This document shows, in pieces, positions 1 through 36,592 of a stretch of DNA of 64,000 nucleotides (positions within the stretch are counted from its first letter, which is position 1; each line of letters starts with the position of its first letter). The notes beneath the pieces are model-generated. The model made no database searches. It had not been told where the DNA came from and was given only the letters and a program-made list of their open reading frames with translations. Made by a program: the position numbers and the translations under genes. Source of the DNA: Eutreptiella sp. 'Long Island Sound 2002'. Taxonomy: Eukaryota; Protista; Euglenida. The stretch spans positions 30,070,001 to 30,134,000 of the forward strand of contig OZ038379.1 in assembly GCA_964036045.1 (NCBI GenBank), given 5' to 3'.

Positions 1-81
1 AGAACACACAAAACATGTGCGGAGGGCGCGTCCTGTCGCCTGCTTACACAGACAAGGTGGGCAACCTGTGTCGCAGTCAAG
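1..81 (+). CDS. GLY1: Threonine aldolase domain exon (window-truncated): (E)[26 protein letters not shown]
   Basis: Matches the LTA ENTHNxxGGRVLP motif; donor GTATGT at 82, phase 1. Confidence 0.9.
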
Positions 82-3000
82 GTATGTATATGTGCTGCAG
101 ACACATGTGTGGTGGGCGAGTGGTTGCTTGTGTGGCCTTCTGAGGGTCCGTATTTTCAAAACATGCCTTTCACACCCCTTCGGCTTTCTCCGGATTAAAG
201 GACCACTTGGGGGCTGCATTGTTTTTTAGTATGAGTATGCCCCGTCTTAGTGAGCTCGCATGGCCCCCTTCACCTCAATTTGCTGCGACTGTCTTGAAGA
301 TGCTGCCAACTCAAATCTTCTGAGGGCCAGGTCTAGTGGTTGGGGGCCAAGAAAACATGTTTTTGCGCTTACACGCTTTTTTGTGGTTTCTGTGTCCACC
401 ACCATCATTGCTTTTTGCACTTCAGACATGGCAGGTATCGAACTGACTTCTTGTTTTGCAAACCATGATGTGGTAGGATCAGATGGTTCTGATTCGGGTA
501 GTTTATCCGATGGAAATGGAGATGTGAAGCGGTTGAGGACTGTGGACATGAACAACATAGATGATGATGACTTGCTTGAGGTTCTGGAATGTGTTGGATT
601 GTGATAATGATGACACTTTGATTCATGATGTGGCTGCTGAAGTTCCATCTGCGCTGCTGGCGTTGCTGAAGTTTAAACTCTTTCAACTGATTGAGACTGG
701 GATTTTGCATGGGCCAACACATGGTCGAGGAAAACATGCTGATGGCAATTTCAGTGAGTCTGCGGACTGTAGTGCAAGCAAACGGTATCGCTTCACGGTA
801 GGGTGGCTTCTCGCTTGATATTGGTCATAACTTCGACCTACTTCATGGGGCCCCATCACGTTGGTACATTGCATGAACCTTGCCTGAACGCTGTGTTTCA
901 AGATCAGCGGTACATTGCCACTGATCTGTGGGGGGCACGTCATCTTCAACATTCAACATGCATTTCCCCTCCACTTACGGTAGCCGCCCCCCCCCCCCCA
1001 CAAACATACCCTCCCCTATGTGATGATGCCACAAATTGAGTACTGATGGGACCCCTGTCTGGTGAAGCAACACAGCAGACAGCACATCAATGCAATGCAC
1101 ACCAACGAACACGCAGATGTCGTGCATCTGCCATCCTGTGGTGACTCTGAGTCTGACATAGATGGCAGGCAATGCAGGGTTTGAAGCAGAGGTGCATGCT
1201 GCAAATCTGTATGCTGTTCACATCTCATTCGGGACTACGCTATCCACATGGCTGCCCTATGCATGGTGCTGATTTTCAGGACTCAAATTGCACATTGATG
1301 GGGCACGCATCCTCAACGCTGCCACCGCCCTCGGATGTGAGCCAAGGATGCTGACTCAAGCTGCTGACTCCATTCAGGCATGCCCCCCCGCCTCCACGGG
1401 CCAATGCTCGGCACCCCCTCTCAACTGCTTGTGCACAGGGCTGCCTCCTCCAGGGGCCAAAGGGTGCAGGGAAGGGGAGGGAAGGGGCGTGTGCAGCAAA
1501 AAAACAGTTGGCTGCACAAAACTAAAATATCCACAACCAAGCCATCCCAAAATGCCCTGTCAGAGCAACCCAACAAGGTATGCCCAATTCAATTTGCAAA
1601 ATTTGCCTTGCCCAACCAAACCCAAATTGGCCTAGCCATGCCTTACCCAACCCAAACCCTTAAAAGCCATTGAGGGCTCCTCCGCCGCGCCTTGGGAATA
1701 ATTCGGACAGAAAACAAGACACGCAAATTCATTGTCATTGTATTCACTGGTTTTTGCACACTCCACCCCTCTGCATTGTGCAATAGGTCCCCTAAGCACT
1801 CTTTTTTTTTTTTTCAAGGGCCCACCCTTTTACCCGCATGTGTGGGGGCTCCCTAAGCGATATGGATAGGCCCTTTTCCGGTTGGGGATATGTCTTGGTC
1901 TTGGGTCCTAACTCAACAATATGTCGAAGATATTCAAGATTCATTGCCGATTCGGGCACCCTAGAATCAGCTAAGCGAAACCCATGGCGGTGTGTAAGAG
2001 TGCTTTGAGCGCTAGATGGGGCAAGACGAGGCAGGAACCAAATGTCGGTTTTTGCTCATTGATCCCGCCCTCGAGCTCAGCCCCGGTTTGATGTGGTGGT
2101 GCTCCAAAGGCAAACGCCGGTGGTCACATCATGTGTTCATACGATCCTTATGCTCCTCGATGGTTGGGGCTAAGGACACCCACAGCCACACCCACACTTC
2201 GGTGTGACCCCTTTCAGGTTGGGGATATGGACTAGCCCCTTTCCCGTTGGGGATATGGACTGGCCCCTTTCAGGTTGGGGATATGGATTGCCCCTGTTCT
2301 TTTTGTAGGTAAGTCGTCCAAGGGGCGGTCCTACTTTTCGGCGTTCGGCTAGCACGGTGCCCAACCCCAAACTTGTGTGTGCCCAAACCTAAACCACACC
2401 AAACGCAGTCGCCCCAAAGCGATGGGAGTAGGCACCTAGGAAAGCACTCACCGCATCGCAGCAGTAGTATGCACCGTGTTGTCGTTGTTCGCCGTGACCA
2501 TTGAACCATTTGGCTAGCCCTCAAAATGATTGATGCCCGATTTTTTGTCTAGATTTAGCCCTCTACTCTTCTTTTTATGAGTGCATGGGATGCGCACTCA
2601 GTGTCTCATATTGCGCCTGAGTGGCTTTGGAAGCAGAAGCGGGAATGTGCTACAACCCAGATCATCAAGTGGTTTCCCTCCCCCGACCAAGTGCGCGGGT
2701 TTAGAATGGGTTTCCTACAATGCCATGAAGTCTAACGGGATTGTCGACTGGAAGAAGGTCTCCCACCATTTTAATGCGGCTTGGAGTCTACGTGGTGAGG
2801 ATGTGGAGGAACGATCTTTGCAATGGCGGGCATGGGCCACAAAGGTTAGGAATGCCCTTCGGCAGCGGTATCGTGTTGCACGTGGTACTTTTAAAGGTCG
2901 ACCGCGCCAGAGAAGTCAGAAATAAATTACTCCCCGGATGATGAATAAAGGGGGAGTGGCCGGGGAAGGTAACAAACTGACACTTACATGGGATTGGGCA

Positions 3001-12000: not shown

Positions 12001-15000
12001 GGCAAGCATGGAAGAGACTTAGTCCCAGCCAGCTCGTCCCTCCTGCACAGCGCACACCCTGTGGGACGTGGGCACAGAGCGGGGGACAGGTGTTTGATCT
12101 GCATTGCGGCCCATCCACACCGCCGCTCTGCCCTTGTACATAATGCAGGCGTTTTTTATAGAAGGCTACACCCCTGCGGCGCCTGCGGCATCTGCGGTGC
12201 GCCCTACGGCGCGCGTTAGGAATAACCCTGACAGCAAACAAGACAGGCAATTCATTGTTATTGGATTCACTACTTTTTCACACTCCACCCCTTTGCACTG
12301 TGCAATACGTCCCTTGGGGACTCTTTTTTCTTTTTTTTTGAGCCCCCCCCCCCCCCCGCCGCTAACTCGTGTGTGTTGGGGCTTGTGGTTGGGGTGATGG
12401 GGAATGCCGGGCTATGTAGCCGTTCTGCCCACGGTCTATGGGTACCAAGTTTGCTTCCTCTACATTTTGGTGCATTTGAAGGGGTTAGTGGTTAGTAAAA
12501 TAGTTTAGCCCATGTGGTCATGCTCAAGAAGGCAGGGGTTATGTTGCTACTTGAGAAGGTATGGGTTCCCCTTTGCCTCCCTGTCAGCAAACGTCCATGC
12601 TTTGAGCGCCAAATTTGCAAGACGAGGCGCTGCACAAATGTCGTTGGTTGCTCGGTGAAGATCCTGCATCCGGAGCTCTTCCCCGGCTCAAGTGCAGTCC
12701 TTGTGCTGGTCACTCAGTGGGTTTTGTACAAGCAGGTACTCCAAATGGTCATGGAGTGGTGTTTTTTCCTTCTTGTTGCAAGTTTCACTGTTTCTACAGT
12801 TAAAGAGGATTATTCCTGCCCTGCGCACAGGTGTAGCCCTCATAGTCCTCCATGCTCTTGGGCTAGGAAGGGGCCTTATGGGCAATAGAAGACGCCTGCC
12901 TTTGTGCAGAGTGCAGTGGACAGTAAAAGCTGGATGTCCTTGTTTGTGTTTCACCCTTTTCAGCGATTCGGATGTCATTTTTTGTGACTTCTCCACCCTA
13001 TTCAGCGATTGGGTGCACAGTGCAGCTTTCAGCCTCAACAGCTCAAAAATTGACATTTCCAACAGCTGTGGGATGGGTTTGGATGATGTTGTGGCAACAG
13101 TACAGGTGCTCGAGCACCCATGGGGAGCCACACAGTGGCTACTAGGCCCATCATCTAGCCAAGGCCATGGGCCCTTCAAAGGTACACCCCCCCCCCTCTT
13201 CAAGGTGCCTTGCTGAAGGCAAGGGAATCCTTTTCGATGCCCCCATTTGTGTGTTTGAGGGCAATCTCGAACATGACATGAAAATGTAGGATTTACCTCC
13301 TTCCCCTCCAGACCCCTGCTAGACCTGCCAGACCTTATTCTCTGGTCTTTTCTTCCTTCACCATAAATGATAATTTCATGTCACTGCTCCCACTCATGTA
13401 CAATTGAAATGGTCAGAATTTCATGGGGATCTCAGATACGCCTGTTGTGAAGCGTCAGATCATACAAGAATCCACTCTTGTCTTTGCCCCCGGATCCGCA
13501 AAGAAAAGGGTGCAACACGGTGTCATGCGCAAGAAAATGTCATGCACAGGAAACTTGAAATGTGCCAAGGCACATGACTAAAAGCGCAGGCTTTGGCTTT
13601 GGAAAGGGTATGACCTGACACAGACAGCTGCATGCGTTTTGTGTAGGTTTGTCTGAGCAAGGGTATTGGTGCCCCCGTTGGATCCATGGTGGCCGGAGAT
13701 GAGGAATTCTTGCATCGCGTGCATCGTGCACGGAAGCTGCTTGGGGGTGCTATGAGACAGGTTTTTGTGTGCTTGGTGTCACCCACCCCAGAGCTTGTGT
13801 CTCCCTCAAATTGCGTGTATTACATCGGGAATGTGTGCCAATGGGTCCACTGATGAGTTGGCGGAAGTTCTTCAGGTCCGTGTAGCATTACGAGGGACAT
13901 GTGTATGTGCATGTGTATGGGCATACCCAGATTCCAATGCTGAGGGTTGTGCTTGATATTTCGGATAATCTAGGTGGGTTGGTCCCTGACAGCTGTGAGC
14001 CATTTTGCAGGGTGTGGGTCAGCGCCGAAGGTGCCAGAAGCAGGGTTTTTTTTTTGATACCCCCCTTTCCCGTGGCTCTGGTCCAGTGGTACACTCAGCC
14101 TGCAGCGTCATCGCGCGCCAGGAAACACGCAACAAAGTGCGAAGTTGAATTCCCAAGTTGTTCAACCGTCAACTCGTTGTTGCCAGTACCAATCAGCAAC
14201 GCTACTCCACTTTTGATGGTTCGCCCCGCCCCTCCCCGGGCCCCTGAGAGGGCCTGGCCCGGCACTATCACCACGGCACGCATTGTGCCACGCAGCACTT
14301 GGCAGTGATGTGGCGGACAGCACCCTGCATGCACCATGCTACACCATGGCTTACACCGCTGTGGCAGCATGGAGGTATGCATTACTCAAGCACACGGCCA
14401 TATGGTGGCACAGCGACATTGTGACAGGCCCTCCAGTACACATGCCAATGCTCATTCTGGTGGAGCGATGGTGGAGTGGTAGTGGGCCTATACGGGGGGC
14501 ATGGGTTAGTCCAGTCAGTCCCCAAACCCTGGCTTGGCCAATGCCTTTGTTGCCTGTTGCGTGTACGCGGGTGATGTGTTTGTTGTTCAGGGTTGGACTG
14601 CATTGCACCTGCGTGCTGTACTGTTTGTAGGCCGGGGTGTTGGCAGCGGCGGCCCTCAAAGCGTTGGATGAGACGTTGCCCAATTTGCACAGGTCTGTTG
14701 CCGTTGTCCAGGAGACAATTGCTGTTTGAACAGAGAGCCGCTGCCCCTCTGTTAGCCCTCAGCCGCGGGGCGTCGTGCCTTTTGGTCCACCACCTCATTG
14801 TCATTCAGGGATCATGCAAATGCCAAGCTGCTGGCCGAGGGATTACACCAAATACCAGGTCCAGCATGGCGGGGCATGGGGCAACTCTGCGCTTTCCTAT
14901 GCGAATCAGAGGGCTGAGTTTGAGGTGTGAGAGAGATAGATACCTCCATGGCCATCACCACTACAGGGGGATATATAGCCAATGTTGAGTGGTCCCCGAT

Positions 15001-18000
15001 GATGGTAGGGGGGGGTGGCCATGGCAAGGGTTACACAGAAGTTTCATTTCTCCTTCAGAAAGGGTTATGCCGCACAGAAATGGCCTGCGATCCCCAGTGT
15101 CTAAGGGACCTGAGAAAGAGGACAATTTACTGTTCTCCCGCGCTGCGCCGTGAACGCCCCATTTGATTTTGGCGGTGAGCCCCGCTCCATGTGATCAACT
15201 GCATTTCATGACGGCATCTGCATCCCGTTGGGCCCCAGCGTAGCAGGATGCCATACAGCCAACTGCCTGGCTGCACAGGGGCGAAGGACCGCACGCACTG
15301 CGAACATGCTTCATGCGTTACCTGCGGCGTTCAGATGGGATGTGCAACTCTGGAGGCTGCTTGACCGGTCTTCTTGCAACACAGTGAGGGTTACTGGCCC
15401 CCCAGCAATGCAGAAACGTTGCCTATTGCCCCCTCAACCAGCCGAAGGCACTCACTGTTGCCGACGTTGCAACGAACGCATTTCTTGCGCGCCTTGCTCG
15501 CGTGGTTTACACGAATATAAATGCCGCTTTATGTCATGTGGGGTCTTGTTCACAGGAGTCATACTGGATCTGCAGCAAGTGCAAACCAACATTGTGCATT
15601 TTTCGCTGGGCCCCGATGCGGCCATTTCGGAGGATTTTCTGATCACAAAGCTCAGGGAATATGGTATGTGCCCCTGTGCAGTGATGGCCCCACTCTGCAT
15701 GGTTGTGGGGCGGGCGGTAGGTGGGCGTCTGAATGGGGCAGCCACTGTCCTGCTGCCAGGTATCTCCATCCCCAGTCCCTGCTCCCCATCCACGGCAACC
15801 CTCTGAAGCGCTCCGCACGCCTCAACAGCTACTCGCAACTCTCACTGACTGCGCCGAGCCAGAGTGCTACAGCCCTTGGGACAGGCCTGCACTCCTTTTG
15901 TTTTGCGCTGGTGCCCGCCGCTGGACGGCACGCATACGGCACCAAAGTCGACACGGCGGAGAGAACCCAAGACAAAGGAACGCAAGTGGGACGTTGAACC
16001 TCCCAATGAACTCTGTCCTTTGCTTGAGATAGGGGAGTGTGCGGCCCATAGGAATGCCAATGCCCAGGGGTTAGGGAATGCACAGGGGTCGGGGTATGTG
16101 GAAGATACAGGGATGGGGGCGCATGGACACCTGCCGGGGGGCAGTGCAAAGGAAGTAGGCCTCATCCAGTGAAACTGTCGGTTGCTCATTGATGCCCTTC
16201 TTGTGGTGCAGGCATTGCCATTGATTACACGTACTCTGGTTCGTTTGGGGATATGCGTGCCGTTGTGCACAAGGATGTGACGCAATCGGACATTGAGGAG
16301 ACAGTGGATCGGGTTGCGCAAGTGATGGGGCACCCCAGCCACATCCGCCAAGTGCAGGTAGTGCTTGATGCAACCGTCACCGTATTCTGAGGGTGCTGTG
16401 AGAAGCATCTTGGGGTGTTTTCGCCTTGGAGATGACGCCAAAGCCAAGTTTCACTGGCCCAGTTTGGGAGCCATCAGCCCCCCCCCCCCCCCCCGCGCAA
16501 AAATGGCTTTGCCTAAGTATGGTGACCCATTCACACCGCCATTTATCTGACCAGGTCAATAATGTAATGTGACGTGGTTCTGTGGTGTTCTCCAACCGTC
16601 TCCAGTGGATTTACCCCATGCCCATGCCTGGCATACAGAATTAGTCTGGGCATTGGTGATCTACTGCTAAGGTGGACCATGCATCACCGGAAATGCTTCG
16701 TCCCGTGGAGACATTACCTCTATCAAGGGATGCGACTGGCCAGAAACCCCTTGCAACTGCATGACATGGTCACAATGCTCGGCGTGACGGTCATCCCGTC
16801 GCTTGCCAGTTGCAGAGGGAAAGGGAGGAATGCATCGTTTTAGAATAAAAATTCCGGATGCACCAGCATGGCCTGATGCAGAATTTCTGTCTTCCCCCAC
16901 AGGAAGAAGGACTAACAATGTGGCACAAACATGTTCACTGGTGGCCTCGATGTACGTCACAGCCATGCCAGGAATAGCAACAGTAGCTATTGCGGAAAAT
17001 CACATTTCAGGCCCTGGTTGCTCTCTTCTTTGTTGTACCCTCGGTTGCGCGCAAGAATGGCATTGTCCAAGTACAAGACCCCGCCATGCTTCCTGAGTTC
17101 GCCTGTGGCTATGCGTCAGCGACCCTGTCATTTTTAATGCTTTTCAGTATCCGCTTTTCAACGCTTGGCAGCCCTGACAAACAACAGCCCTGTAAGTGTA
17201 ACTCTGGTCAATGCTGCTGCTCACAGCCCATAGCACCAGACGGCATGTAGATTGTACACAAACCTTGATGCAGTCCAATTGTTTCGGACTGTGTGGTTCA
17301 TCCGCTTTGCCCAGGGGCAATGTCCATGCTCGTCAATGCATTCCAACGTCCAGAATGCATGCTTTGCACTGCATGCACCCAGGGGTATTAATATTGACAA
17401 ACTGCCCACAACACGTCCTCATTGATTACCATTCTTGTGCTCCGCGCATCCAATGTACGTGGTGGTGATCACCTGAACTGTGTGCCTTGTAGACCCTGGA
17501 TGTACTCCCTCGTCATTGAGTAGAGCACCATGGGTTTAGGTTCTTTGCACAGAGGTCTGGGCATCAAATTTGGAGGCTGAGCTACAAAGTGTGTGGCTTG
17601 CACACATTCTTGTGTCAGCCAATGCCAAAAATTGCTGCACGAGGATGGGTTCCGAGTGGAATGCATTTGATACCTTGGGTGCACAACACACATGCTCAGT
17701 ACTGCAATCCATGTGACGGACAGGTGAGCAGTTCTTCATCACCAGCACAGTGCAATTACAGGTACATAAAACAAAAAAGCAAACTTGGGTGTACATGCCA
17801 ACTCCCCCCCCTCCTTTTGTACTCTCACCAACTGTCGTCCTCTCCGTTGACACATGCATGAGCCAGGGGGTGCATCTGCACGCATGGCTGGTCGATGGGC
17901 AGAGGTGCCAAGATCGCTAGCTTGTCGGTCAAGCTGTCAAGTTGTCCCCTTTGGCCCTGGCTGGCCTGTGATCCTGGACATTGGCCCACCAAAATCCAAA

Positions 18001-21000: not shown

Positions 21001-24000
21001 CCATACTGGGGGGGGGGTGCATGGCAGGTGCTCAGGTCGGTGTGGCCCACCCGCTCTGTGGCGAAGCGGAGTAATTTCATGCATTCCCATCCCACCCCTG
21101 CCTCACTTCGCGGCCAATGGTCCACGTCAGTGGCTTCTTCATCGCCATGAGTGCTGTGTTTTCGGGAGCGGGATGAGGTCATGTGGTTCATGGTTCATCT
21201 ATCATAGCCTACGCCTGACGAGGATGAGGTGCCCAGATTGAACCCCAGTTGGGGCGTCAGTGTTAGGGTTAGAGTGTCCCTGGTGACTTCGGAAGGGACT
21301 GATACTGGCAAGCTCATGCCTGGAGATCACCTGGGTCTCCCTCTTCGTAGAAGCAGTTTTTGTTGCCAAGGACGGTCACGGGTGCAGGAAGGGGACGGGG
21401 ATGGAGTCGAGTGTCGGGTACCAAAGGGGACAACGACTGGTTTTTCTGACTGCGAGGGGGCGCACGCCATCTTCGCCTTCTGTGTCTGCAACGACGGGTT
21501 TGGGAGCGCAGCATGCTGCGACACCACAGACCACGTGCGAGCACTACCGTTGTCTGCATTGCTGCCAGGGATCACTGTCCTCAGTGCACGCAAGCTCAGA
21601 CCCTTCAGCGCGACATTGATTCGTTGGATATTCCCCCCAATACCAAGCCTGTCAGGTGTGGCTTCGCACAGGGATGGCAGGTGTAGAGGTCCTGCATTTA
21701 CAGCCCACATCCGAAGTTGAACCCTGACAAGCAGCAGCAAGCAGCGAGCAGCAAGGAGAGCCATGCGAGGTTGCAGGGTTGATGTACTGCTGTCGAAGTG
21801 TTGTGGACAGCATTGCAGGGTTGTTGTACTGTGGTTGCAAAGGGGTGTCAACGCGGCAAAGGACAGCTGGCGGTGGTCATTTCAGTGCTACAGACGCCAG
21901 CGTGGAGTCCTTGCGCTCAACACCCTGTGCTACACCACATGCGGTGCTTTCAGGTAAGGTATGGTGACTCTGAAACAGGCAGCCCACCTGGCCCCTGGGT
22001 CAGCAACATGCCAACAGAGTATGCAGAACATAATGCAGCACTGCCTTTGGAATGCGGCATAGTATAGTAGTGGTCACTCGAGCCAAGGGCAGAGGCACCA
22101 AAGAAACAGTTGGAGCAAAGAAAAACCAGCCCTAGTGGTCACTCGAGCCAAGGGCAGAGGCACCAAAGAAACAGTTGGAGCAAAGAAAAAACAGCCCTGA
22201 GACGTTTAAGCCCAGCAGATGCTTGGAGAGATTTGCTTGAATGCCTGGGAGCTGTGACGAGCTGTTCTTTGTTTGTGTGCTTCTGTGCAATTGTGCTCCA
22301 TGGGGCTTTGCCTTGCGGCGTCGTCATCCTCCCGCATCCAGGATTCCCACGCTGTCATGCCTGCCCAACAGTGGTCTTGTCCAATCTGCTGCTGTACACT
22401 GTTCGCCCTCTGCCCTCTGCCCTATGCCCTATGCCCTTCGCCCCTGCCGCATGCCCTGTGCTCCGTGGATGCTTGCTGCTATCTGTGCTCTCACTGCGTG
22501 CACCGCAGCTGGTTGTGGCTTGTTCCCAATCTGTTGCCGATCAACTGAATGAAACCAAGACCAAATGTATCTGTTGATTTGGCCACTGCGTTCAACAGTC
22601 CGCCAGCTCAGAAAAGGTCCACACCTGATTCTTCTACTTCATCTTTTGAGCAACAGATCACAGGCACAGCACTCACAGCGTGGTTGAGGGACGCGATTGG
22701 CAATGACACAGTGCACTGAGCACGCATGGGACGTACCCTGACACCTGAGCAGATCCAGGACTTTAGCCATGGTTGATACGTTTTCTTACTGCTGCTGATA
22801 CATCAAAAACACAGATATGCTTCAAAACCTGCAGTCAAGCATGTCTTTCAAGCGTGAGGGGTGTTGACCTGGGGGATTGCTGTGCTTGCTGCTTGCTTCT
22901 GCTTGCTACCATTTGCTGCTGCTTACTGCTTGTTTCGCCTTGTTACTGCTTGGTACCCTCTTTCTTCTGCTTGCAGCATAAAAGTGGAGACGCGGAGGGA
23001 AGGGGAGGGAAGGGGGGGCAAGCTCTTTGCAAAAGTCTGGGCATCAGAGAAGGCTGTTGCGGTCCATGACTGGGCCACCACAAATGCCTTTTCATTGGCC
23101 ACACATGGCAGCAGCAACTGGTGGGTCCGCCCAAGACAGCAAACTCCTCCGTCCATTCTAGTAGCCGGGCATGCGACCCCTTGTGGGGAGGTGCGAGGAC
23201 CAATCCACACAGCAAATCGCTCCTTGCTCGCTGACATGTCGCTGCCCGGACTCTGGTGCATCGCCAAGTGTGTAGAGTGAACCACTGGTGTGGGAATTGT
23301 AAAACTTGGGGGGCAAGGCGGCGGGCCAAAAGGGGTCCAGGAAGCACCATCTGGCTAAGTGTCGGACACCTGTGAGCTGTCGGGTACGCGCAGGGGGACC
23401 GCAGACAAGCACCCTTACAATATCATTGAAATGCAGCAAAACATGGCGAACACACATCATGGCAGCTTTTCTCTGATAGTGCACATGTCCCTTGTGTATT
23501 TTCTTTTCATTAGCTCTTTTCGCCAGGCAATAGGCGCTGATCCTCCCATTTGTTCCAATAGTGGCTTTTGGCAGTTCCAATTTTCGTGGGGCATACAATT
23601 TTCTTCAATTGTTGTGTGTGTGCGGGAAATAGGTCACGTGGTACTATGGAAGGTATCAGGAGGCCCGGGAGGTCTGGTCACGGCACCCTACTTCTTTGTA
23701 CGCTTGTACACACATTTCTTGACTTGTTTACCTCAGGCTTTCCCCTCCCCCTGCCCCCCAAAGCAGACCTTTGACCAACAAGTAGGTCATGTGACAAGAC
23801 ATGGTACTGAACAGCGGTTCATTGCACAATAATCAACAACAACCTGTATCGAACAACCCCGGAGTTCTTCGTCGGATACTTTGGGACGTGGATCTTAGTA
23901 CAGCCTGGTTGCAGGACCCAGCTGTACCAGTAAGGAGAAGGCACCGTGTGCTTTGGGGAGGACGTCTGTCTCCTGCTATTTTATCTACCATCAACTGTTT

Positions 24001-27000
24001 TGTTCATTTCAGTGTGAGTGTCACATCGGATTCGCTGCTAATTGACTGGGGTCATGGCATCATGGTGGCCACCCCAGGAGAGCACATTTCGCAAAGCAAG
24101 TTCAGCTTGGAGTGGCTCCGGGCCAACTGCTATTCACCACATGCCCGAAAACAGAGATTGGATGCACTGCCAAGCGCTGTCTTGTGGTCTCATGATGATA
24201 AGAAGGTGTCATTTCCCCATCCCCTTGTGCCTGATTGATCAAGTCAGGGGGAAGGGGAGAACGGGTGTGTGGGGTGTGTGACAGGCAGGTAGGTAGGAAG
24301 GCAGGAGGGTCCAAAGCAGGCAGCCACGTAGGTAGGCAGGAGGCAGCCCCTTCATTTGACCCAACGTTTTTGAGGACTCTGCTCTACCAAACGTAGATAC
24401 GCCATATGTTGCGTGAGACCGTGCATTGCATGGCTACATGTCCCGAGGCAGTCTGTGGCGTGGTCCCTGAGGCTGTGTGCATCCCAACCCCACAGAGAGT
24501 GTAGCCAGTGTGCATCCCCAATATCCACTTCATGATTTTTAGAACCTCACGAAAGGCGTGCGGTATTCAGAGGATCAGGGGTATGCAAGGGACATGTTGA
24601 CAATCTTGGGGCAGTATGGAGCTGTGCTGCTGCATGGGGTGCCCCCCACATATGAGGGGCTCAACACTGTGGCTGGTCACATTGGGCATTGGAGGAGCAC
24701 TGTCTGGGGATCGGGTGTGTGTGTGCCCCACCTTCCATGCCCTGCAGAGCTGTAGAGGGAGAGGTGACGAGGTCTGCATACAGAGGCACTGCACTGAGAT
24801 TCCTGGGCACCTGAAAGCCACCCCGGACCGCTTCATGAATGATTTTGGCTCTGTGTGCAAGGTGCTCTCTTCTTTGATGACGTCACTCGGAATGGTAGAT
24901 CTAACAATCCTTGAATGTGATCCAACTGCTACACATGGCAGTTTTTCGTGCACAAAAAATAATCTTCCAAAAACAGTGGACACTCAAAAACAAAATCAAC
25001 ACTGGGAAAGCTCCTGAGCAGGGGTTTTTTTCGACAGCTACTACGTACCAGTAGAAGCAGTGACTCCTGGGAACAGTTTGCTGGGCTTTAAAATGTTTTG
25101 GTATTTAGGCTTCTTCTTTGTTTTGTCTAGCCGAGCGGGGCGGCTAGTTCGAACCCAGCCCCCCCCCCCTCCCTCCCTCAAAACCCCAAACGTTCTCCTA
25201 CCCGTCTTTCTGGCATTTGCCATTTTGGGGGAAACTGCCAAGAAGTTTTGAATGGGGTGATTTTTTTTCCACCTTATTGGTGTACACTCAAAATGCTCAA
25301 AATACATCGGGGATCTCAGGAGCAGTGCCAAATTCGCCTAGTTTAAGTGCTTCCGCGTCTTTTGGTGTCAATCAATAGCCGTCCTCACCTATTCTTCCGC
25401 CCCTACAATTTTTTCGCATTCCACCTGCTCACATTTCAAATATTCAAGTATCTGGTACACTCTTTCTCATGGCACCCATGAAAATGAAGCATGTGGTGCA
25501 CGCCGAGTATGCAGGCAAGTGTGGTATTACAATATCAATGGTGTCAGTGTTTACCAGCATGTGAATGGTACTGCCCATCGTGATGCAATGACCCGCCGCT
25601 TACAAGCCAACGGTGTGTACATTGTGTGCACCTACGACTGTGAATGTGGGGTTCGGCTTACCAACATTACCCAATTCCAAATTGATCAACACCGAGCAGG
25701 TGTGGGTTGTCGTCCGAAGGTTGGACGGTCAATGCAGCGTAGGGGACATGGGTGTGCAGCTTGTTCCGTGGGACTTTGCGTTGGATGGGTCCAATGCCCC
25801 GCAATTGGCGCCCGTGGAGCAACCCCGCCCCACGGGAATCCCGTATTTGCCGTACAGCCCCGAACAGTGGCCCGTACAGTGGGTTCTCAGAACAGAAATA
25901 GGCAATATTAGGCATTCATTTGTCTCTTTTTCCTGCCCTCCCCTATGCTCTTGACCAGACTATGCCTTGTAATGTATGCCACTCCAAGAATGCTGAAACT
26001 GTTGCTTTTTTGTCTTTGGCCGAGTCGGATCGTTGTACCCTTCGACAGAAGCATTCTGATTGTGCTGAAGATTGGGTTATTTGTGAACTGTGTGTCCGCC
26101 AAGCCCGCCCAAACCCTTTATTTGGGTCAACGTCCAGTCGGTCCGCTACTTCAACCAGTACTACTGCTGCTGCTACTAACGCTACTGATCCCGCAACAAG
26201 TTCAGCCACTATTACTGCCACGCGTGCTGTACCAGTGAAACCAGTGAAACCTTTACGCAAAGCAAAGAAAGAGAAGACATTGAAGACCATCACCGTGGAT
26301 GACCGTGTAGCAAAGTGTGGGAAGTATGGGTTGTACAACAACAATGGAGTTCTGACTTGTGGGCCCTGTGGACAAAGATTGGACTACACGAGGGACGACG
26401 TCATCACAACTCATATTACACGAGATGGTCATGACAGGAAATGTGCAGACCAAATTTCCCATGGAGCACAATACGTGTTGGCTGCAGGGTATGAGGAACG
26501 AGAAAAACTACGACAACACAAGGCAGCACAAGCCAAAGAACGAGCAGAACAACGGAGGAACCCTAGCCACAGCACCCGACCGTGGGACAAGGAGCGTGAA
26601 AAGAAATATCGGGCTCAGCTGACAACAGAAAACCGTGCAAAGCGTGAGGCTTTTCGAGAAGGGTCTGATGTCCGAGTTTGGAAAATCAATATATGAATTT
26701 ATCACCCACTTGCAGGTGGACATTGTTCCCAAAGGGAACTCAGGTGGACAATGTACCCCCATTGGCCATCGCCTGTTCATTAGGGTGATAGAGCCAGAGA
26801 GCAAACTGCAGAATTGGGCCCAAGATGTTGGGCTGGTCCTTGGTGTCAAACCATTGCTTGATATGATTCGAAACCCTGCATTGCGAGAGGCACATGTGAA
26901 CAGTTTGAAACGTGTTGCTCAAAAGGTTCTTGCTGTGATCGCCAAATACAAGGACAAGCAATTGCCTTTTTTTGATGAGCTGCGGGTGCTAGACCCCAGA

Positions 27001-30000: not shown

Positions 30001-33000
30001 ACTCCCCAGGCACCCTCCTAGATCCCCCCCCCCCCATCCTACCCTCAAAAGCTCTACACCACGGTTCAGTGTCAATATTCGAACATGCTGCCCCCCTCGC
30101 GTATGGCTTTCAATGAAATTTGATGTGTGTGCAAGCTACGTTGTTAAAGGAAGGTTTCTTTTCAGAATACAACGTTGTTGATCTAGACCTAGGTCCATAG
30201 GTGTCCCCCAAATCGGCCCCCCTATTGGGCTCCACTTGGCTGAGACCTTTGGGCCACCTCTTCGCAACGTGCGGACCTAAGACGGTTGCCACAAGGAGGC
30301 CCGGCACTACCACCATTTTTGCAAATTTTGGATGAAGAAAAAAAGTGGCGATGGTCATGCGGTGGGTGAAGTGTGGAGTGACACCCTCTTCCCCACCCTT
30401 TTGCCAAGGCCCCAACCCCCCGCGACATAGCCCACCCTTCTCCCCCTGGAGGCCCTAGGGGACCCAAGATAGTGCGGACCAGGCTGGTGTAGGCCTACTG
30501 AGCCGGGATTCCCGTAGTGTCCTTTGGTGACCACTGGGTTGCCTTGGGCCAAGGTTGGGTCATCATTGGGCGACAATGGGAGCACATAGAAATCCATGGG
30601 GAGCCGTGTAGCACCAATCAGGCCTAGCTATTGGAGTTTATGGGTCTGTGAAAGGGTTGTTGTCCGGCCACAATAGCCCATTACTATAGATGGATAGGCA
30701 CAACCCTGGGGCCACTTTGTGGTGGATTGTGAGGGGGCAAATTCTCTGTGAGCTCGACTTGCTGAAAGCAATAGAATTTGCTGAAGGAAGGTATCCTTTC
30801 AGAGCACAATGAGGAATGAGGCATTTTGGCAGCATTCATGTTCATTCATGCCCACTACTTTGTAGAGGTTATGTTCACGTTCGTTCAGGTGAATGCCGTT
30901 GTCTGCAGGCAGTGTTGCACTGCTCTGTTGCAATGGGGGGCCAGTAGCCTGCAGTTGTGTACATGGCCCCCGTAACCAACAGTGCTGGTCCCAGGTGCTT
31001 GCAGATCCCCTGAGTCCCTAACGACCCATGTGTATTCCCCAGATCAGCCTCCCGGTACCCCAGTGCCATGGAGCTGATTTGGGCATGTCGTGGGTTGACT
31101 GAGAAGTAGCGTCATTTACCGGTTGCAGCCCCTGTGCGCCGACTCAGACCCAGGTCCGAGCCAGAAAGGAGTAGACTCCCCCTCACTTCCTCATGGTACA
31201 ACTGCGATGTACAGTGCGCAAAGTGCATTGGCAGTGTGGGGCACAGGCTGTGTCTTCAGGGGTGAGGGGGAGGGGGGGCTGGGGGCAAAATTGCTCCCCA
31301 ACCTGTCGTGATATTTGGGTCCCATGCAGGATGGGGCGGGGGATGTTCGTTGTGAGATGAGTGGGGTCCATTCAGGCGATGCGACTCTTATCCGTGCAGC
31401 AGACTGAGCGTGCATCTGGGTGCGGCTTGTTGTGTTTTGGCACAGGCACATGGGACCTGGCTGCCACTACAAGTGAGGAGTCCGGCACCTACATCCCTGA
31501 TACAGGTATGTAGTGCACCGCCCTTTGTGGTTGCTTTGGGTGGGAATGATACTGAGGGCTCCTTGGAACCGAAATCTGAACCCTCGTCGGAGGGCCCTTG
31601 GGACCAATGCGTCCCTGATACAAACTGAGGTCGGAGTGGCAGTCATGGGCCTGTTCCTACCCCGACCCGCAGGAAGACCTCTCGCTGCCTTTGGTGGGAG
31701 TGGGTTCTGAGTGGGCCAGTTGCTGCGCCATGTGATGCGGGTGGGAGGGCGCCTGCGGCCGCTGGGTGTGTGAGCTGCTCGTCGGGGTCCTCGTTGGCGT
31801 TTCTTGGGGGGATTGTCCGTGTGACGCACGGGCAGTGGGCCGTGGACATGGGGCACCGGAGGGAGCCTGGGGCACCGAATTGTTGTCGGCGGGAGGGGTC
31901 CGGGGTGGGGGAGCGGCGCTTGCGCTGCTGGCGCCGCATGTCATGACCGGGGGTGCATGCCTGCTTGCCGGTGCATGTCTCGGCTCCGATGGGGGGCCTG
32001 TGATGCCCTGGTGGGGGACAGTGCGCGCTTCAGTCCACATCAGTGCCCCATTCCATCCCATGCCTCGCCACTCCAGCATCACAGTCTCGTCTGGTCTGGG
32101 CAGCGGCTCCACAATGCCCTGTGACCCCCCATTCCTGTCCCCATTTTCCGTACCTCAGCATATCTCAATGTGGAGCTCAAACCGCACGTCGACGGCTGCT
32201 ATTTTCATGACGTTCCTGGACTCCAGATCTTTCTCAGTACGCAGTCCGCTCCCGAAGGGGGCGCTACGTGGCTGTCCGATGGCTTCAGCGTTGCGGAGGT
32301 GTGCAGCACCATTCTGAAGGGCAGCGTCCGTTTGTCTTTTTGTCATTGTAAAACGCCCGCCCAACACAGGGCCCAGCGGAGACCAGGCAGTTGATGATAG
32401 CGAACTGGCGATCAGCTGCTGGCAGCAGTCGACTGCCTGCGGCGAGTCGCTTGGGCCGCTGGCAGAGTACTGCAGCGGGCAACGGCGCACCCCCGTCATT
32501 GGTTTGCAGCATCGGGGGCCTTGCGCGCATTGAGAACTACGGCGTCAAATGTGGCGGTGTGATGCATCAGAGAAGTCACTGCCCTTAGCACATTGACTGC
32601 ACACAAAGTGCCAAGGCCATGAAGCCTAACCCTTCCCAAAAAAAAGTGGTTGTTGGGCATGAGACTCACGTTGTGCCATCATGTGGTGCTGTCCAGTCCG
32701 GAGGGCCGCATCCGTGGCTCAGATGAGGCTTTCGGCGATGCATCGACATTCAGAAACAGGAAGAGGAGCCTGTTTTTTTTCCTCAAGGACCGTGACCCCC
32801 CCCCCCCCTTTTGCGCTTTGTACACCGTCAGGTTATGAGCCGTGCAACGGCCGCCGATGTGGAATCCTTGTGCCTGCCGTCTCTGTATCGTGCTACAGGG
32901 AGGGAGGGATGTACGTACTCCGGTGGTGGAGGGTAATTGGCGGGTTCGAATCGGATACGAACATCCCGATTCCAAGGTGGCTAACCACTGAATTTCCTGC

Positions 33001-36000
33001 TCCAGTGGTGGCCTCCGGGTTCGAACACGACCATTCTCAGGACCTCCTCAACGTGTCACTCAATAGGGTAGGCTGGGAATACAGTTTTATGCCTCTGACC
33101 ACTGATCTAGGGGAGTACCCTTTGTACACTGTCAGGGTGACCGTCGGTTACATGCCAACTGCTCGGGTACTTGCCAACAGCCGTCAGTTAACCACCAACT
33201 GCTGCTGACTTGTAGAGCCATGCAGAACCGCAACACAAATGAACAACCAGGCCCCCAACCAGCGGACATGCCCGTCGGCGATCCCTGGTTTGGAGAACAG
33301 GCACAAGCGCCCCAGGGCATGGTTTACTGCCATTGTGTGAGTGGGGCGGGTTGCATGCAGAAGCACGTATACCCTTTGGCATATTGGCATGTGGAGGGTT
33401 AGGAACCCTCCGCTGCGGTCATTGTCAGGAGCTTCGATTGACGAATCCGAGGGCATTCGAGTTCTTTTCCACGGTGCCTCTTCCATTCCACCACGTCACC
33501 GAGACTAGCTCTGTTTTGGCACACCACACGGTATTCCAGCGAGATGATCATGGACAAGGTGCCGGCTGCGTGTGCGTGCACAGTGTGTGCCCATGGCGTA
33601 TGCCTTTGACCTGAACAGGATCGTTAGCCTAGAACTGACCAGTGGTCGTGCCCCACCCACCCCCTTTGTCCTGCTCCGTGCGTCCATTGGGGCCCTTGCA
33701 CGTCGCTGGAGGTAATCGGAAGTGCTAGACTCAGTATACGGCGGAGCGACGTGCTCTTGAAGGCCGACGCCCTGGGGCCTGGGACCGCAGCAGGGTCCCA
33801 GGTCACGGGACGTGGGAGTTATCCTGGGCTCCGCAGCACTCGGAGGCTGACACAATGCGTCACAAGGGCACCCGGGAGGTATGAGGGCCATGAGGCATCT
33901 TTGCAGCAGGACATGGTCGTGCTGCGTGGGGACTGCCCGACAGAACAGTGCCAGTCGTCTTGTGGTCACATCTTGGAGACCGTTTGATCGCCTCATGAGA
34001 GTTTCATGTGCATACATTGCACTGTGTGCACCCCACCCCAATACTGCACATCACACCACACACCCCTTCTGAGTGACTCCTCGATGTGCCAGTGGAACTC
34101 ATTGGGGGCTCCACTGTGACATGTTGTTCAGGACATCTGCTGCACTGCGCCCTTGCACCACACAGCAGTACTAATGACTCAGGGCTATGCGGGCAGGGGA
34201 TTGCACGTTGCCTGCCCGTGTCGGCTAACAACTAGAAAACCACCACCTTTTCATAGAGCAGATTGTGTGCTCCATTGAGACCACTTCTAAACCACTGCAG
34301 CTACCGCAGGCCATGTCTGCAAGATGGCTGAGCAGCCTCAGTGAACGCCCCAGTGAATTTACTCTACGTCGGGTGGATAATTGGGAATTGGCTTCAGAGA
34401 AGGACTGGCGTGCAGCAATGGGTTTTCGTGTTTCAGTTTGGTTATTGGATACACCACCCTCACAGTACTGTGCAGTGCAGCAGCAGGGTACATAAGTGCC
34501 TCAGGAAGCACCCTTATTTGCTGGTCAGGTCCGCAATGGGACTGAAAATGGGACGTATTCTGGGAACCGATGCAACTAGAAACAGCTCAAGGCTGGGAAG
34601 CACAGGCAGCACTCCAACTGGTTGAATCCTACCCCTGGTACCCCCTTGTCCAGACACCGCCAATGTCGGCCGTCAGACTCAGACGGTTGCATTAATGGCC
34701 CCTACCAACAAGCCCCTCAATCCCTGTACTGTGCGCACCCCGTCACCTGTTGTCCTGCAAGCTGCAAAGTGTCGAAAAGAAATGCAATAAGTCATGCTGC
34801 CAAATCCCTCTTTTGGTAAGGCCACAACAAAAATGGATGAGTAATCACTCCCTTCTGCCGAGGCATGCAATTGACCTCAAAAAGGTGCTATTGGTTGTGC
34901 TGAAGCATACCAAAGGCTTGGCATCGTTGAGCTGCCGACGGGGACACCAAAAAATGTCCCACAACATGGAACAGAGATTCTGTTGATGACCTGTATTGAC
35001 AAGATATATGGCAACACTACACATAGCAAACAGAAAATGGGTGAAGGGTGAATGGGAGACGCACACACAGACACGCCCATACATATATGTTGCTTGGCCC
35101 CTTGGACTGGGTGGGAGGTTCCTATGTGCTATGTCTGTGCAGTGTTTGCTGCTTGTCATGGTCTGTGTGTGTGTGTGTGTGTATGTGCTCCGCTTGATAT
35201 GCGCTGGGGCCTGTGGGTTCATGTCTTTCTCCTGCCCTCCCAATTCATGCACTGCCAGACAGCTGGGGATGCCCAGGGGCTGGGATGGAAGGGGACTGCC
35301 GAGAAGTCTATCGCCCGGTGCACATGCCTTGCTTTGCTACCGCCAGCATTGTTGTTGAGGGTCATCGCATCGTGTGTGTGCGCACGTGTGCACCAATCGT
35401 GTTTGTTTGTGTGGGGCGGAGCAACGAACAGTGCTGGCCTACATCAACAGCCTTACAAAAGTTGTCTCAATGGCCATAGGTGCCCGTGGCTGTTTATCAG
35501 GTGAGTCTGTACGTAAAGCTCTGCATGTGCATGCTGACGTGCCACAGCTCTGTGCATCCGTGCAGTCATTGGCTTCTCATACAACAATGATGATCGTGCG
35601 GTGTTGAAAGATCTTCCAGAGAGAATTGTGGAGGAGTTTTACGAGCATTTGCCCACGTTGTTGCGACTCACCAGAGACCCAAAGTTCGGGTATGAGCGTA
35701 TGGGCCTCTGTGCAAGTCCAGCACCCAAGGGAAGGGCTTGGGTCAAGGGGCTGTGTGGGCGGCTCTGCAAGGCCTCAGCGTCTGCATGAGCACTATTTCA
35801 TTTGCTGTCGGGTTGCACAGTTGATGTGTGGGTGTCAGCCACAATGCAATGATTTCTGCAGTTGGGAAGTAAAATTACAGCCGGGGCAATTGATCATCGT
35901 CAACAACAGTCGGGTGATGCATGGCAGAAGAGCATTTCAAGGTGCCACAAGCGCTGTGTGTGTGCCTGTATTTGCCCGTCGCATGCAGTGTGTGGTGCAT

Positions 36001-36592
36001 ACAGTGCAAAGGCATATCCGCTTACGCCATGCGGACGGGCTTGCGTCAGAACCATTCGTGGTTGTGTACGTCCGCGTTTACATGCCATCAGACCGTCATG
36101 TTCCTACGCATTGATACGGACACGATGTCACTCATATGGCGACCCAACGATTGCTCCTCGTGGGGCAAGGGGGGGGGGTCGTTCCCTTTTTCAGTTGCAG
36201 TTTGAGGACCAACGAGGGCTTGAAATCGGGCCGCCAAGCAGTCCAGACAGAAAAATGCTGGAATTGTTTTCCCCCGATGCCACATACCTCAGATCATGGG
36301 GCAAAATTTGCGTCCAATGTGTTGAGGTAGCCCCACATCCCCCGACCCCACGACCGGGCCCTGGGCAAGGGCCCTGTCACGACAGCCAAGGAGGGGGTCT
36401 GGGCACATGGGCCTGGCGCCCCACCCCCAACCCCTCCCCTGGGAGAGCAATTTTCTCCGCCTACCTTCGTGGCGCTTCATGTCTCGAACGCCTTCCTCTG
36501 GCTCAGGGGCTCGGAAGATCATTGGCGGCTACATTGCGAAGGACCAGCTGCACAGCGCCCTCAGGACCATGGACATCCCGGTGGTGTACTGA
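1..36592 (+). CDS. Spliced gene, 17 exons in window, 5'-partial: L-threonine aldolase-like (putative HTML aldolase) domain fused to trimethyllysine dioxygenase-like domain; 611 aa in window
   Basis: Exons 1-81, 1280-1377, 13647-13760, 14631-14692, 14809-14858, 15556-15663, 16212-16357, 18618-18724, 21569-21655, 24013-24205, 24543-24714, 31446-31505, 32159-32298, 33429-33558, 35566-35689, 35862-35941, 36507-36592. Every junction has AG acceptor, GT donor (GC at 1378) and matching phase. Total 1838 nt = 2 + 612 codons ending TGA, with no internal stop. Confidence 0.85.
1280..1377 (+). CDS. GLY1: Threonine aldolase domain exon: [33 protein letters not shown]
   Basis: HxDGARxxNA motif of LTA; acceptor ttttcAG; GC donor GCATGC at 1378. 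Confidence 0.92.
1870..2290. repeat. 28-bp unit CCCTTTCAGGTTGGGGATATGGACTAG x3 (2208-2289) plus a dispersed copy near 1870
   Basis: Direct inspection; probably subterminal repeats of a decayed element. Confidence 0.6.
3075..3530 (+). mobile_element. Degenerate non-LTR (L1/Tx1-like) reverse transcriptase fragment
   Basis: IRQG (GxRQG-like), DLLIL (YADD-like remnant), then [17 protein letters not shown] and EYPGVLLG, which match late RT motifs; broken by stops and frameshifts. Confidence 0.7.
4600..11420 (+). mobile_element. Large decayed DNA transposon inside intron 2 with several coding blocks upstream of a CMC-like transposase; boundaries approximate
   Basis: GC-rich coding-like blocks (5450-7030, 7230-8670, 8900-10830) separated by CGCG-palindromic spacers. 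Copies of the ~190-bp repeat unit lie at 4640-4830 and 11270-11400. No TIR or TSD identified. Confidence 0.55.
9230..10830 (+). pseudogene. Degenerate DDE transposase, CACTA/Mirage/Chapaev (CMC)-like
   Basis: Across frames: IAVDGT (first D), CWVC (C2C), PDYGLHG (DxxLH), then [33 protein letters not shown] (H4H followed by catalytic E). Order fits the CMC/Transib-type motif layout. Confidence 0.65.
13647..13760 (+). CDS. GLY1: Threonine aldolase domain exon with PLP lysine: [38 protein letters not shown]
   Basis: CLSKGxGAPVGS and RKxxGGxMRQ are hallmark LTA motifs; gtgtAG acceptor, GT donor at 13761. Confidence 0.95.
14631..14692 (+). CDS. GLY1: Threonine aldolase domain exon: [20 protein letters not shown](R)
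   Basis: Continues MRQ|AGxLAAA motif; phase 0 start, phase 2 end. Confidence 0.9.
14809..14858 (+). CDS. GLY1: Threonine aldolase domain exon: (R)[16 protein letters not shown]
   Basis: DHxNAxxLA motif; cattcAG acceptor, GT donor at 14859. Confidence 0.9.
15556..15663 (+). CDS. GLY1: Threonine aldolase domain exon: [36 protein letters not shown]
   Basis: VQTNIV motif; donor GTATGT at 15664; phases match neighbours. Confidence 0.9.
16212..16357 (+). CDS. GLY1: Last aldolase-domain exon plus linker: [49 protein letters not shown]
   Basis: RxVxHxDVxxxDI is the LTA C-terminal motif. Phase-0 donor CAG|GTAGTG at 16358; unspliced read-through stops at TGA 16388-16390. Confidence 0.85.
18618..18724 (+). 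CDS. TMLHE: First dioxygenase-domain exon: [36 protein letters not shown]
   Basis: LxIxWxDGxxSxYxxxWLR is the GBBH/TMLH N-terminal (DUF971-type) motif; phase-0 acceptor tgtacAG, donor GTAAGT. Confidence 0.88.
18763..19480. mobile_element. 718-bp non-autonomous TIR element, TA target
   Basis: TA|AACCCCCCCCGCTTTTAATATTCAC ... GTGAATATTAAACGGGGGGGGTT|TA, with multiple internal TTAATATTCAC subterminal repeats. Confidence 0.75.
21569..21655 (+). CDS. TMLHE: Dioxygenase-domain exon: [28 protein letters not shown](S)
   Basis: Completes WLR|DHC...TxQRxxD motif; phase 2 at both ends as required. Confidence 0.9.
22068..22197. repeat. 65-bp tandem duplication
   Basis: TAGTGGTCACTCGAGCCAAGGGCAGAGGCACCAAAGAAACAGTTGGAGCAAAGAAAAA(C/A)CAGCCC twice. 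Confidence 0.9.
24013..24205 (+). CDS. TMLHE: Dioxygenase-domain exon: [15 protein letters not shown]...[39 protein letters not shown]
   Basis: Second LxIxW...SxF/YxxxWL repeat and LW motif of GBBH/TMLH; catttcAG acceptor. Confidence 0.88.
24543..24714 (+). CDS. TMLHE: Dioxygenase-domain exon: [57 protein letters not shown]
   Basis: YGxxxxxGVP...IGxxRxTxW/YG motif of TauD-type BBOX/TMLH enzymes. Confidence 0.9.
25253..25819 (+). repeat. 567-bp direct repeat, copy 1 (encodes small Zn-finger-like ORF)
   Basis: Near-identical to 27907-28473 at a constant offset of 2654 bp. Confidence 0.92.
25920..27372 (+). pseudogene. Internally deleted hAT transposase: CGGBP1-like N-terminal Zn finger (ORF 25920-26696) and hAT C-terminal dimerisation domain (ORF 26635-27372)
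   Basis: [38 protein letters not shown], and [40 protein letters not shown]. Too little sequence lies between them for the catalytic core. Confidence 0.8.
27435..27680. repeat. ~140-bp tandem duplication with internal (AAAAAGCGCCAG)n expansion
   Basis: CCCAGCTTTTTTGTTGTTGTTTGTGATTGTGTTCAATGCATG occurs at ~27440 and ~27579, each followed by 12-mer repeats. Confidence 0.85.
27688..27754 (-). ncRNA. tRNA-like Pol III cassette (SINE-head-like), not a functional tRNA
   Basis: Minus strand reads ATGTCATACCCGAGTTGGTA (A box) ... GGGTTCAATACCC (B box), followed by T7. Confidence 0.6.
27907..28473 (+). repeat. 567-bp direct repeat, copy 2
   Basis: Matches 25253-25819; contains ORF 28068-28496 ([23 protein letters not shown]...[21 protein letters not shown]). 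Confidence 0.92.
31446..31505 (+). CDS. TMLHE: Dioxygenase-domain exon: [20 protein letters not shown](A)
   Basis: Supplies the W...DTAY substrate-pocket segment; ggcacAG acceptor, GTATGT donor, phase 1/1. Confidence 0.85.
32159..32298 (+). CDS. TMLHE: Dioxygenase catalytic exon: [47 protein letters not shown]
   Basis: HxD iron-binding motif (HVD), followed by YxxxxPGxQ and GGxTxxxDGF. Confidence 0.95.
33429..33558 (+). CDS. TMLHE: Dioxygenase-domain exon: [43 protein letters not shown]
   Basis: LRxxxPxAFxxxSxxPxxF motif; phase 0 start, phase 1 end fit the flanking exons. Confidence 0.88.
35566..35689 (+). CDS. TMLHE: Dioxygenase-domain exon: [42 protein letters not shown]
   Basis: YNNxDRAV motif typical of TMLH; GTATGA donor at 35690. 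Confidence 0.92.
35862..35941 (+). CDS. TMLHE: Dioxygenase-domain exon: [26 protein letters not shown]
   Basis: LxPGxxxxxxNxRVxHGRxxF carries the distal iron-binding His and a 2OG-binding Arg. Confidence 0.95.
36507..36592 (+). CDS. TMLHE: Terminal exon: [28 protein letters not shown]
   Basis: RxxxGxYxxxD C-terminal motif; TGA at 36590-36592. Confidence 0.9.

Follow-up and report, generated by a model that had tools for sequence, protein, structure and literature searches.

For the first two steps in the synthesis of carnitine, the enzyme families, the reactions and the action of a threonine aldolase on 3-hydroxy-trimethyllysine (HTML) in Candida and mouse are established. In animals the second of these enzymes was unassigned until 2024, homology and co-evolution analyses for the HTML aldolase having been inconclusive (PMC11016064). 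Mouse Tha1 (Htmla) and Candida albicans HTMLA are stand-alone members of the pyridoxal phosphate (PLP) fold-type I threonine aldolase family; mouse Tha1 cleaves HTML ~1000-fold better than threonine, and mammalian HTMLA is described as cytosolic (PMC11016064). Here we analyze a 64,000-nt stretch (the window) of the euglenid Eutreptiella sp. 'Long Island Sound 2002' (assembly GCA_964036045.1, contig OZ038379.1, positions 30,070,001 to 30,134,000). Its gene on the + strand, ending at 36592, encodes an aldolase of the same family with the same proposed reaction, but as the N-terminal half of a fusion with a dioxygenase of the trimethyllysine hydroxylase (TMLH) type. Taken as a whole, the locus is probably best explained as one euglenid nuclear gene for a fused aldolase and dioxygenase that would carry out steps 1 and 2 of carnitine synthesis.

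The dioxygenase half resembles TMLHE/TMLD (TIGR02410) in its GBBH-like N-terminal and TauD-fold domains, its HxD...H triad, Arg at +2 and +9, aromatic cage, Asp231-type residue and NN motif. It differs from animal TMLH in being joined to an aldolase, in sharing only ~30% identity with it, and in that its homologues score under the TIGR02410 cut-off. The gamma-butyrobetaine hydroxylase (GBBH) BBOX1 (TIGR02409) and TmpA (PDB 6NPB) have the same two-domain fold but carry Asn where the fusion and TMLH have Asp. A comparable two-step logic is found in guanitoxin biosynthesis, in which the Fe/2-oxoglutarate (2OG) beta-hydroxylase GntD acts with GntG, a threonine-aldolase-type enzyme, on a different amino acid (NF041363, NF041359). 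In contrast to the fusion, GntD and GntG are separate proteins, and GntD belongs to another dioxygenase subfamily (its model gives ~20 bits on the homologues of the fusion). The records with the same domain order and motifs as the window gene, EG_transcript_3771, GGOE01018063 and CAMPEP_0117563606, are cDNA-derived predictions from other species, to which the window adds an intron-exon structure and independent RNA across the junction.

From the DNA sequence alone it is ambiguous whether the two halves form one gene. The aldolase frame could read on beyond 16357 and end at the stop codon 16388-16390, and there is an in-frame ATG at 18648 in the first dioxygenase exon. An earlier interpretation made from the letters of the window (the sequence-only reading) had nevertheless placed a splice joint, QVQ|GTD, at 16357/18618. 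RNA of the locus was found in environmental runs only (estuary, seawater), and contigs from three RNA runs (X1, X9 and X10) and one DNA run (X2) were placed on 14600-20590. X1 record 1 (364 nt) matches 15586-15662, 16211-16354 and 18615-18725 in succession with zero mismatches and continues for 32 nt more. X9 record 16 (208 nt), also with zero mismatches, matches 16214-16354 and 18615-18681. The two contigs come from separate estuary metatranscriptome runs, of different samples and studies, and contain the same in-frame junction. Because CAG is common to both sides, the RNA joint corresponds to the GT-AG splice 16357|18618, which removes the predicted intron of 2260 nt. The intron itself is genomic, since the X2 DNA run covers 14600-18794 contiguously. 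Downstream, the X10 contig continues after 18725 as GATCACTGTCC..., the sequence of the exon at 21569. These results confirm that the aldolase and dioxygenase halves are cis-spliced into a single mRNA. A lack of joining transcripts, for example with mRNA ending after 16390, was the outcome that the sequence-only reading had named as fatal to the fusion; the contigs join the halves, and no RNA depth was found over 16388-16390. An exact search of the 31-nt junction in JGI metagenome contigs gave no match.

Two alternatives bear directly on these data. The halves could be two adjacent separate genes joined by an assembly or read-through artefact; they lie on the same strand only 2.2 kb apart, and the aldolase frame could stop 31 nt past its last exon. 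A false join is unlikely, however, because a 3-nt overlap cannot produce one in 31-mer contigs, and the identical in-frame junction occurs in two separate RNA runs. Homologous fused open reading frames (ORFs) are also found in intron-free transcripts of at least 5 other records, and we regard the two-gene explanation as extremely improbable. Alternatively, the fused mRNA could be accompanied by separate enzymes, the aldolase being made from transcripts that retain intron 16358-18617 and the dioxygenase from spliced-leader trans-splicing at 18618 followed by initiation at ATG 18648. Euglenids trans-splice most mRNAs, as is generally known, the in-frame ATG lies 30 nt past the acceptor, and a stand-alone relative exists (P0003, below). 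Against this, RNA depth in the three RNA runs was zero over 16400-16799 and 17200-18599, the stop needed to end an intron-retaining message was without RNA cover, the RNA contigs had no reported loose end at 18618, and the residues ahead of ATG 18648 are conserved with the homologues. Such additional isoforms are, in our view, quite unlikely. As the start of a separate gene in the main form of the transcript, ATG 18648 was rejected in view of the RNA joints and the conserved residues ahead of it. The sole RNA signal within the intron was a 50-nt piece (16934-16983) with unrelated flanks in a bin of high DNA word depth, and we read it as a repeat. In the X2 run the DNA word depth climbs from ~35 to 1,000-30,000 at 16400-16600, 18800-19600 and 20000-20590, the last of which is matched by many RNA contigs with mismatches. 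These three segments are highly repeated short elements within introns.

We also compared the window protein with predicted proteins from other organisms. A phmmer search with one 71-aa exon gave 3 matches, P0003 among them. The architecture PF01212 + PF06155 + PF02668 was found in five proteins. P0128 (770 aa, label EG_transcript_3771, presumably Euglena gracilis) is full-length and transcript-derived; P0127 (781 aa, label GGOE01018063, which we take to be Euglena longa) comes from an ORF called complete; P0125 (795 aa), likewise full-length and transcript-derived, is from Gymnodinium catenatum MMETSP0784 (CAMPEP_0117563606); P0007 (779 aa, complete) is from an intron-free 2917-nt transcript contig of SRR13378176 (L001); and P0004 (620 aa, partial) is from JGI sample 3300006415. 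The N-terminus of a further partial protein, P0126 (512 aa), aligns with the aldolase C-terminus, with no PF01212 listed by Pfam. Over its visible length the window protein is colinear with all six, with identities of 52% to P0128 and P0127 and 40-44% to P0125, P0007 and P0004. The linker between the domains differs in length and sequence among the fusions. The proposed search of protists for the same architecture returned fusions from the two records read as Euglena and from Gymnodinium catenatum, among others, and the predicted proteins indicate that the fusion is conserved across euglenids and dinoflagellates. The Pfam domains expected by the sequence-only reading were recovered in part: in the window exons Beta_elim_lyase was detected and GBBH-like_N remained below threshold, while the full three-domain set was found in five homologues. 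The fusion is rare. No cluster of at least 50 members with an aldolase-dioxygenase architecture was found in the ESM Atlas, and a degenerate-pattern scan of metagenome contigs found 16 dioxygenase loci, whose best segments gave no match to the aldolase half (0/16). The best named feature of an ESM Atlas search with P0128 was a giant-virus cluster of 160 proteins with a 2OG-Fe dioxygenase and a class-V aminotransferase (score 0.79, weak), another PLP-plus-oxygenase fusion.

Family scores were obtained for the homologues and for single window exons rather than for the whole spliced window protein. On the aldolase side, two exons match Pfam PF01212 (Beta_elim_lyase) at 32.2 and 41.4 bits, against a threshold of 27, over profile positions 163-232, and P0007 scores 253.8 bits. 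The PLP Schiff-base lysine (CLSKG), the Asp of HIDGAR and the carboxylate-binding Arg before VxH (MRAVVH, exon L6) are all present. The N-terminal half of the aldolase, with DxRSDT and the PLP-stacking His, is upstream of the window and is present in P0128, P0127, P0125 and P0007. In a search with the aldolase half of P0128, it scored somewhat better on bacterial L-allo-threonine aldolases (Aeromonas and Thermotoga, E 1e-81 to 1e-85) than on the 8PUM/8PUS L-threonine aldolase entry, which we take to be mouse Tha1 (E 1.8e-77); E. coli LtaE followed with E 8e-71. Mouse Tha1 is an efficient HTML aldolase (PMC11016064), and the aldolase half belongs to its family; the sequence-only reading had noted that GLY1/THA1-type threonine aldolases are implicated in this step. 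Among NCBIfam models, the 'GntG family PLP-dependent aldolase' was passed by the homologues with 305-413 bits against 230 (P0128, 413), and the LtaE equivalog NF007825, which takes at least 312 bits, gave 215-285. The tree of the aldolase half is poorly resolved (75/75) and does not decide whether the fusion had a single origin.

In human TMLH the functional residues are H242/D244/H389, R391, R398, the cage W221/Y217/Y234 and N334; specificity is thought to depend on Asp231, which binds the alpha-ammonium group and whose counterpart in BBOX is Asn191 (PMC7764450). The window protein has the HxD...H iron triad and, after the distal His, Arg at +2 and +9 for 2-oxoglutarate. It shares with every fusion these two Arg, an Asp at -11 and a Tyr at -8 from the first iron His, an upstream Trp and the NN motif (YNNDDR). 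GBBH-like fungal proteins, in contrast, have Asn at -11 and are without the +9 Arg. In a maximum-likelihood tree, a 20-sequence Asp-type clade (support 99/97) contains the oyster TMLH orthologues and all of the fusions, and is separate from the Asn-type fungal and bacterial GBBH-like sequences; animal TMLH is represented in this tree by the oyster orthologues, with no experimentally characterized TMLH among the sequences. Within the clade the fusions group together weakly (86/63). By its marker residues and its placement beside animal TMLH, the C-terminal half appears to be the complete TMLH-type dioxygenase that had been proposed, an assignment decided by residues rather than by NCBIfam scores.

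The fusion could be real and yet act on another substrate, either as a module for beta-hydroxylation and retro-aldol cleavage of another cationic amino acid or in the breakdown of trimethyllysine for nitrogen or glycine without carnitine synthesis. The closest solved structures to the dioxygenase half are TmpA (PDB 6NPB, E 2e-49), which is not a carnitine enzyme, and then human BBOX1 (1.6e-35), with no TMLH structure among the solved-structure matches. The best model for the aldolase half is that of the GntG family, and the known carnitine pathway has been described as 'especially present in opisthokonts' (PMC11016064). Nor do the NCBIfam dioxygenase models speak for TMLH, as set out below. 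On the other side, the protein agrees with TMLH in its Asp231-type residue, its aromatic cage and its +9 Arg, and the clade contains animal TMLH. Trimethyllysine is further favoured over butyrobetaine because the substrate of a threonine aldolase has to be a beta-hydroxy-alpha-amino acid, as is the case for HTML but not for carnitine; an aldolase partner would be senseless for GBBH or TmpA, since their products are not alpha-amino acids. A carnitine context also fits L004:1-2072 (ENA ERZ1764445 k141_27799037; P0135), where a single frame leads from an Asp-type TMLH-like dioxygenase (SDSAYT..PHID, YNNDDR, VMHGR) into a complete Asn-type GBBH-like one (NIAYT..LHQD). This protein may be a fusion of carnitine-synthesis steps 1 and 4. 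We consider a different substrate unlikely, though less so than the separate isoforms discussed above.

Several observations weigh against a fused enzyme of carnitine synthesis at this locus. On TIGR02410 (TMLD, cut-off 268.3 bits) P0128 scores 195.7, P0127 205.9, P0125 235.3 and P0007 233.8 bits, while a control oyster TMLH passes at 352.9 bits; because they score under this cut-off, the fused homologues fall outside the NCBIfam TMLD equivalog. The TMLD, GBBH and TmpA models give them similar scores, all of them below the respective cut-offs. On TIGR02409 (GBBH, cut-off 414.75 bits) the scores are 197-234, and Asp stands in place of the Asn191-type residue. The RNA support consists of low-depth metatranscriptome contigs (depth 4-5.5) and not of full-length reads, and the N-terminus of the window gene, hence its targeting signal, lies beyond the window. 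Finally, P0003 (L003:1-1582, JGI 3300025763), a transcript that encodes an Asp-type dioxygenase alone and whose ATG is preceded by in-frame stops, is nested in the fusion clade as sister to the fused P0004. Its placement suggests that the fusion either was split again or originated more than once.

The AlphaFold model of P0128 contains two confidently folded domains, with a mean predicted local distance difference test score (pLDDT) of 92.7, ~80 in the linker, and a predicted template modelling score (pTM) of 0.63. As this last value is moderate, the relative position of the domains is uncertain. The enzyme would consist of an N-terminal PLP-dependent low-specificity threonine aldolase, a ~20-residue linker and a C-terminal, complete Fe(II)/2-oxoglutarate dioxygenase. 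The dioxygenase half is predicted to hydroxylate N6-trimethyllysine at C3, and the tethered aldolase half would split the resulting HTML into glycine and 4-trimethylaminobutyraldehyde, so that steps 1 and 2 of carnitine (or gamma-butyrobetaine) synthesis would share a compartment. The mitochondrion is the probable site, because the full-length homologues open with a short Arg-rich leader: 15-35 Arg/Ser/Ala-rich residues precede the DLRSDT start of the aldolase, and in the model of P0128 the leader is a low-confidence helix. The composition of the leader suggests mitochondrial import. We read the model as proximity by tethering, with no evidence in it for a built tunnel, and substrate channelling between the halves is speculation. 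A bolder version, in which a mitochondrial bifunctional enzyme of euglenids and dinoflagellates converts trimethyllysine to trimethylaminobutyraldehyde and glycine, the intermediate is passed between tethered sites without any need for HTML export, and the fusion arose once and then moved between these unrelated lineages, is possible but less likely than not.

Exons were located by tblastn guided by three homologues (P0003, P0004 and P0007) and by splice signals. As in the sequence-only reading, 17 exons were rebuilt; they give 1857 nt, open throughout without an internal stop and in an order colinear with the full-length fused homologues (Table 1). Likewise, HIDGAR, CLSKG, HVD, HGR and YNNDDR all lie on the + strand where that reading had placed them. 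Fifteen introns are GT-AG and one, of 12.3 kb, is GC-AG (1378-13646). Junctions 15663|16212, 16357|18618 and 18724|21569 are verified by RNA, the remaining ones being derived from splice signals and homology. Judged from the full-length homologues, the sequence for ~175 N-terminal residues lies upstream of the window start, and with it the first half of the aldolase domain.

Table 1. Exons of the fused gene and the intron between its two halves, in window coordinates
Feature	Position	Strand	Evidence
Aldolase exon L0, cut by window start; frame from base 3	1..81	+	tblastn to P0007 and P0128 (ENTHN.CGGR motif); donor GTATGT
Aldolase exon L1 with HIDGAR (1291-1308), upstream of the 12.3-kb GC-AG intron	1280..1377	+	PF01212 32.2 bits, profile positions 163-193
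Aldolase exon L2 with PLP lysine motif CLSKG (13650-13664)	13647..13760	+	PF01212 41.4 bits, profile positions 195-232; 63-66% identity to P0004 and P0007
Aldolase exon L3	14631..14692	+	tblastn; GT-AG sites; some RNA depth in run X9
Aldolase exon L4	14809..14858	+	tblastn; splice sites; X9 RNA depth in bins 14600-14999
Aldolase exon L5 (...LREYG)	15556..15663	+	X1 RNA contig spans 15586-15662, joined to 16211
Aldolase exon L6, last of the aldolase; donor at 16358	16212..16357	+	mismatch-free RNA contigs X1 record 1 and X9 record 16, spliced to 18615/18618
Intron between the enzyme halves, GT...AG, 2260 nt; retention would lead to stop 16388-16390	16358..18617	+	RNA depth 0 over 16400-16799 and 17200-18599; crossed by X2 DNA contigs
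Dioxygenase exon T1; internal ATG 18648	18618..18724	+	GBBH-like_N 20.1 bits; RNA contigs X1, X9 and X10
Dioxygenase exon T2	21569..21655	+	X10 contig loose end after 18725 reads GATCACTGTCCTCAGTGCACGCAAGCTCAG = exon T2
Dioxygenase exon T3, second half of N-terminal domain	24013..24226	+	tblastn, splice signals; RNA runs contain 14-36% of words of 23985-24705
Dioxygenase exon T4 (...STVWGSG)	24543..24714	+	tblastn; splice choice
Dioxygenase exon T5 with cage Trp and Asp at 31499-31501 (TMLH Asp231 position)	31446..31505	+	pattern and splice signals; residue table
Dioxygenase exon T6 with HVD iron ligands (32185-32193), DGFSVAE	32159..32298	+	tblastn E 1e-10
Dioxygenase exon T7	33429..33558	+	tblastn, splice signals
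Dioxygenase exon T8 with YNNDDR (35580-35597)	35566..35689	+	motif, tblastn
Dioxygenase exon T9 with VMHGRR (MHGR from 35917): distal iron His, Arg at +2	35862..35941	+	motif, tblastn, splice signals, residue table
Dioxygenase exon T10: Arg at +9, stop codon	36507..36592	+	splice signals, residue table

The two window exons compared with GBBH-like_N gave 20.1 and 16.8 bits, weak scores below its threshold of 22.8. Long, GC-rich (up to 64%) ORFs without a Pfam match are present on both strands of the 12.3-kb intron, which lies inside the aldolase domain. The 6.7-kb intron 24715-31445 contains two overlapping ORFs, 25920-26696 and 26635-27372, the second with a weak match to a hAT dimerisation domain (E 0.0015). 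Both are flanked by direct repeats (~25041-25911 and 27815-28496) with near-identical ORF translations, and the insert resembles either a hAT-type element or an insertion that was duplicated. About 400 bp past the stop codon, + strand ORFs at 36967-37385 encode a motif resembling that of disulfide isomerases (CSEQGVSGYPTI) and a tail rich in lysine and glutamate; one tested piece of these ORFs gave no Pfam match. They probably mark the following gene, in the same orientation. With up to 3 mismatches allowed, no dinoflagellate spliced leader was found in the window. This absence and the 52% identity to P0128 and P0127 argue for a euglenid source, and the presence of the locus in RNA from estuaries and seawater suggests that the species is marine or brackish.

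In a search of the literature on the fusion and on trimethyllysine, butyrobetaine and carnitine synthesis in Euglena and dinoflagellates, with subscription literature outside the search, we found no paper describing the fusion, and the words fusion and fused are absent from PMC11016064. The fused sequence itself is not new, because fused proteins sit unannotated in public transcriptome sets. What is new is the recognition of the fusion, its exon structure, the direct RNA evidence for the junction, and its spread over euglenids and dinoflagellates.

Because it occurs in nature, is expressed and is conserved, the fusion of a threonine aldolase with a TMLH-type hydroxylase adds an independent, evolutionary line of evidence for assigning the second step of carnitine synthesis to threonine aldolase. 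It also takes the likely first half of this pathway into euglenids and dinoflagellates. In mammals the two steps are split between mitochondrion and cytosol, whereas here both are suggested to occur in one compartment. The fused protein also offers a compact two-step catalyst for the engineered production of carnitine or butyrobetaine, and lends itself readily to tests of whether substrate is channelled from an oxygenase to a PLP enzyme. If the bolder version above is true, the fusion would be a natural Rosetta-stone proof of threonine aldolase as a carnitine enzyme and would place the pathway well beyond animals and fungi.

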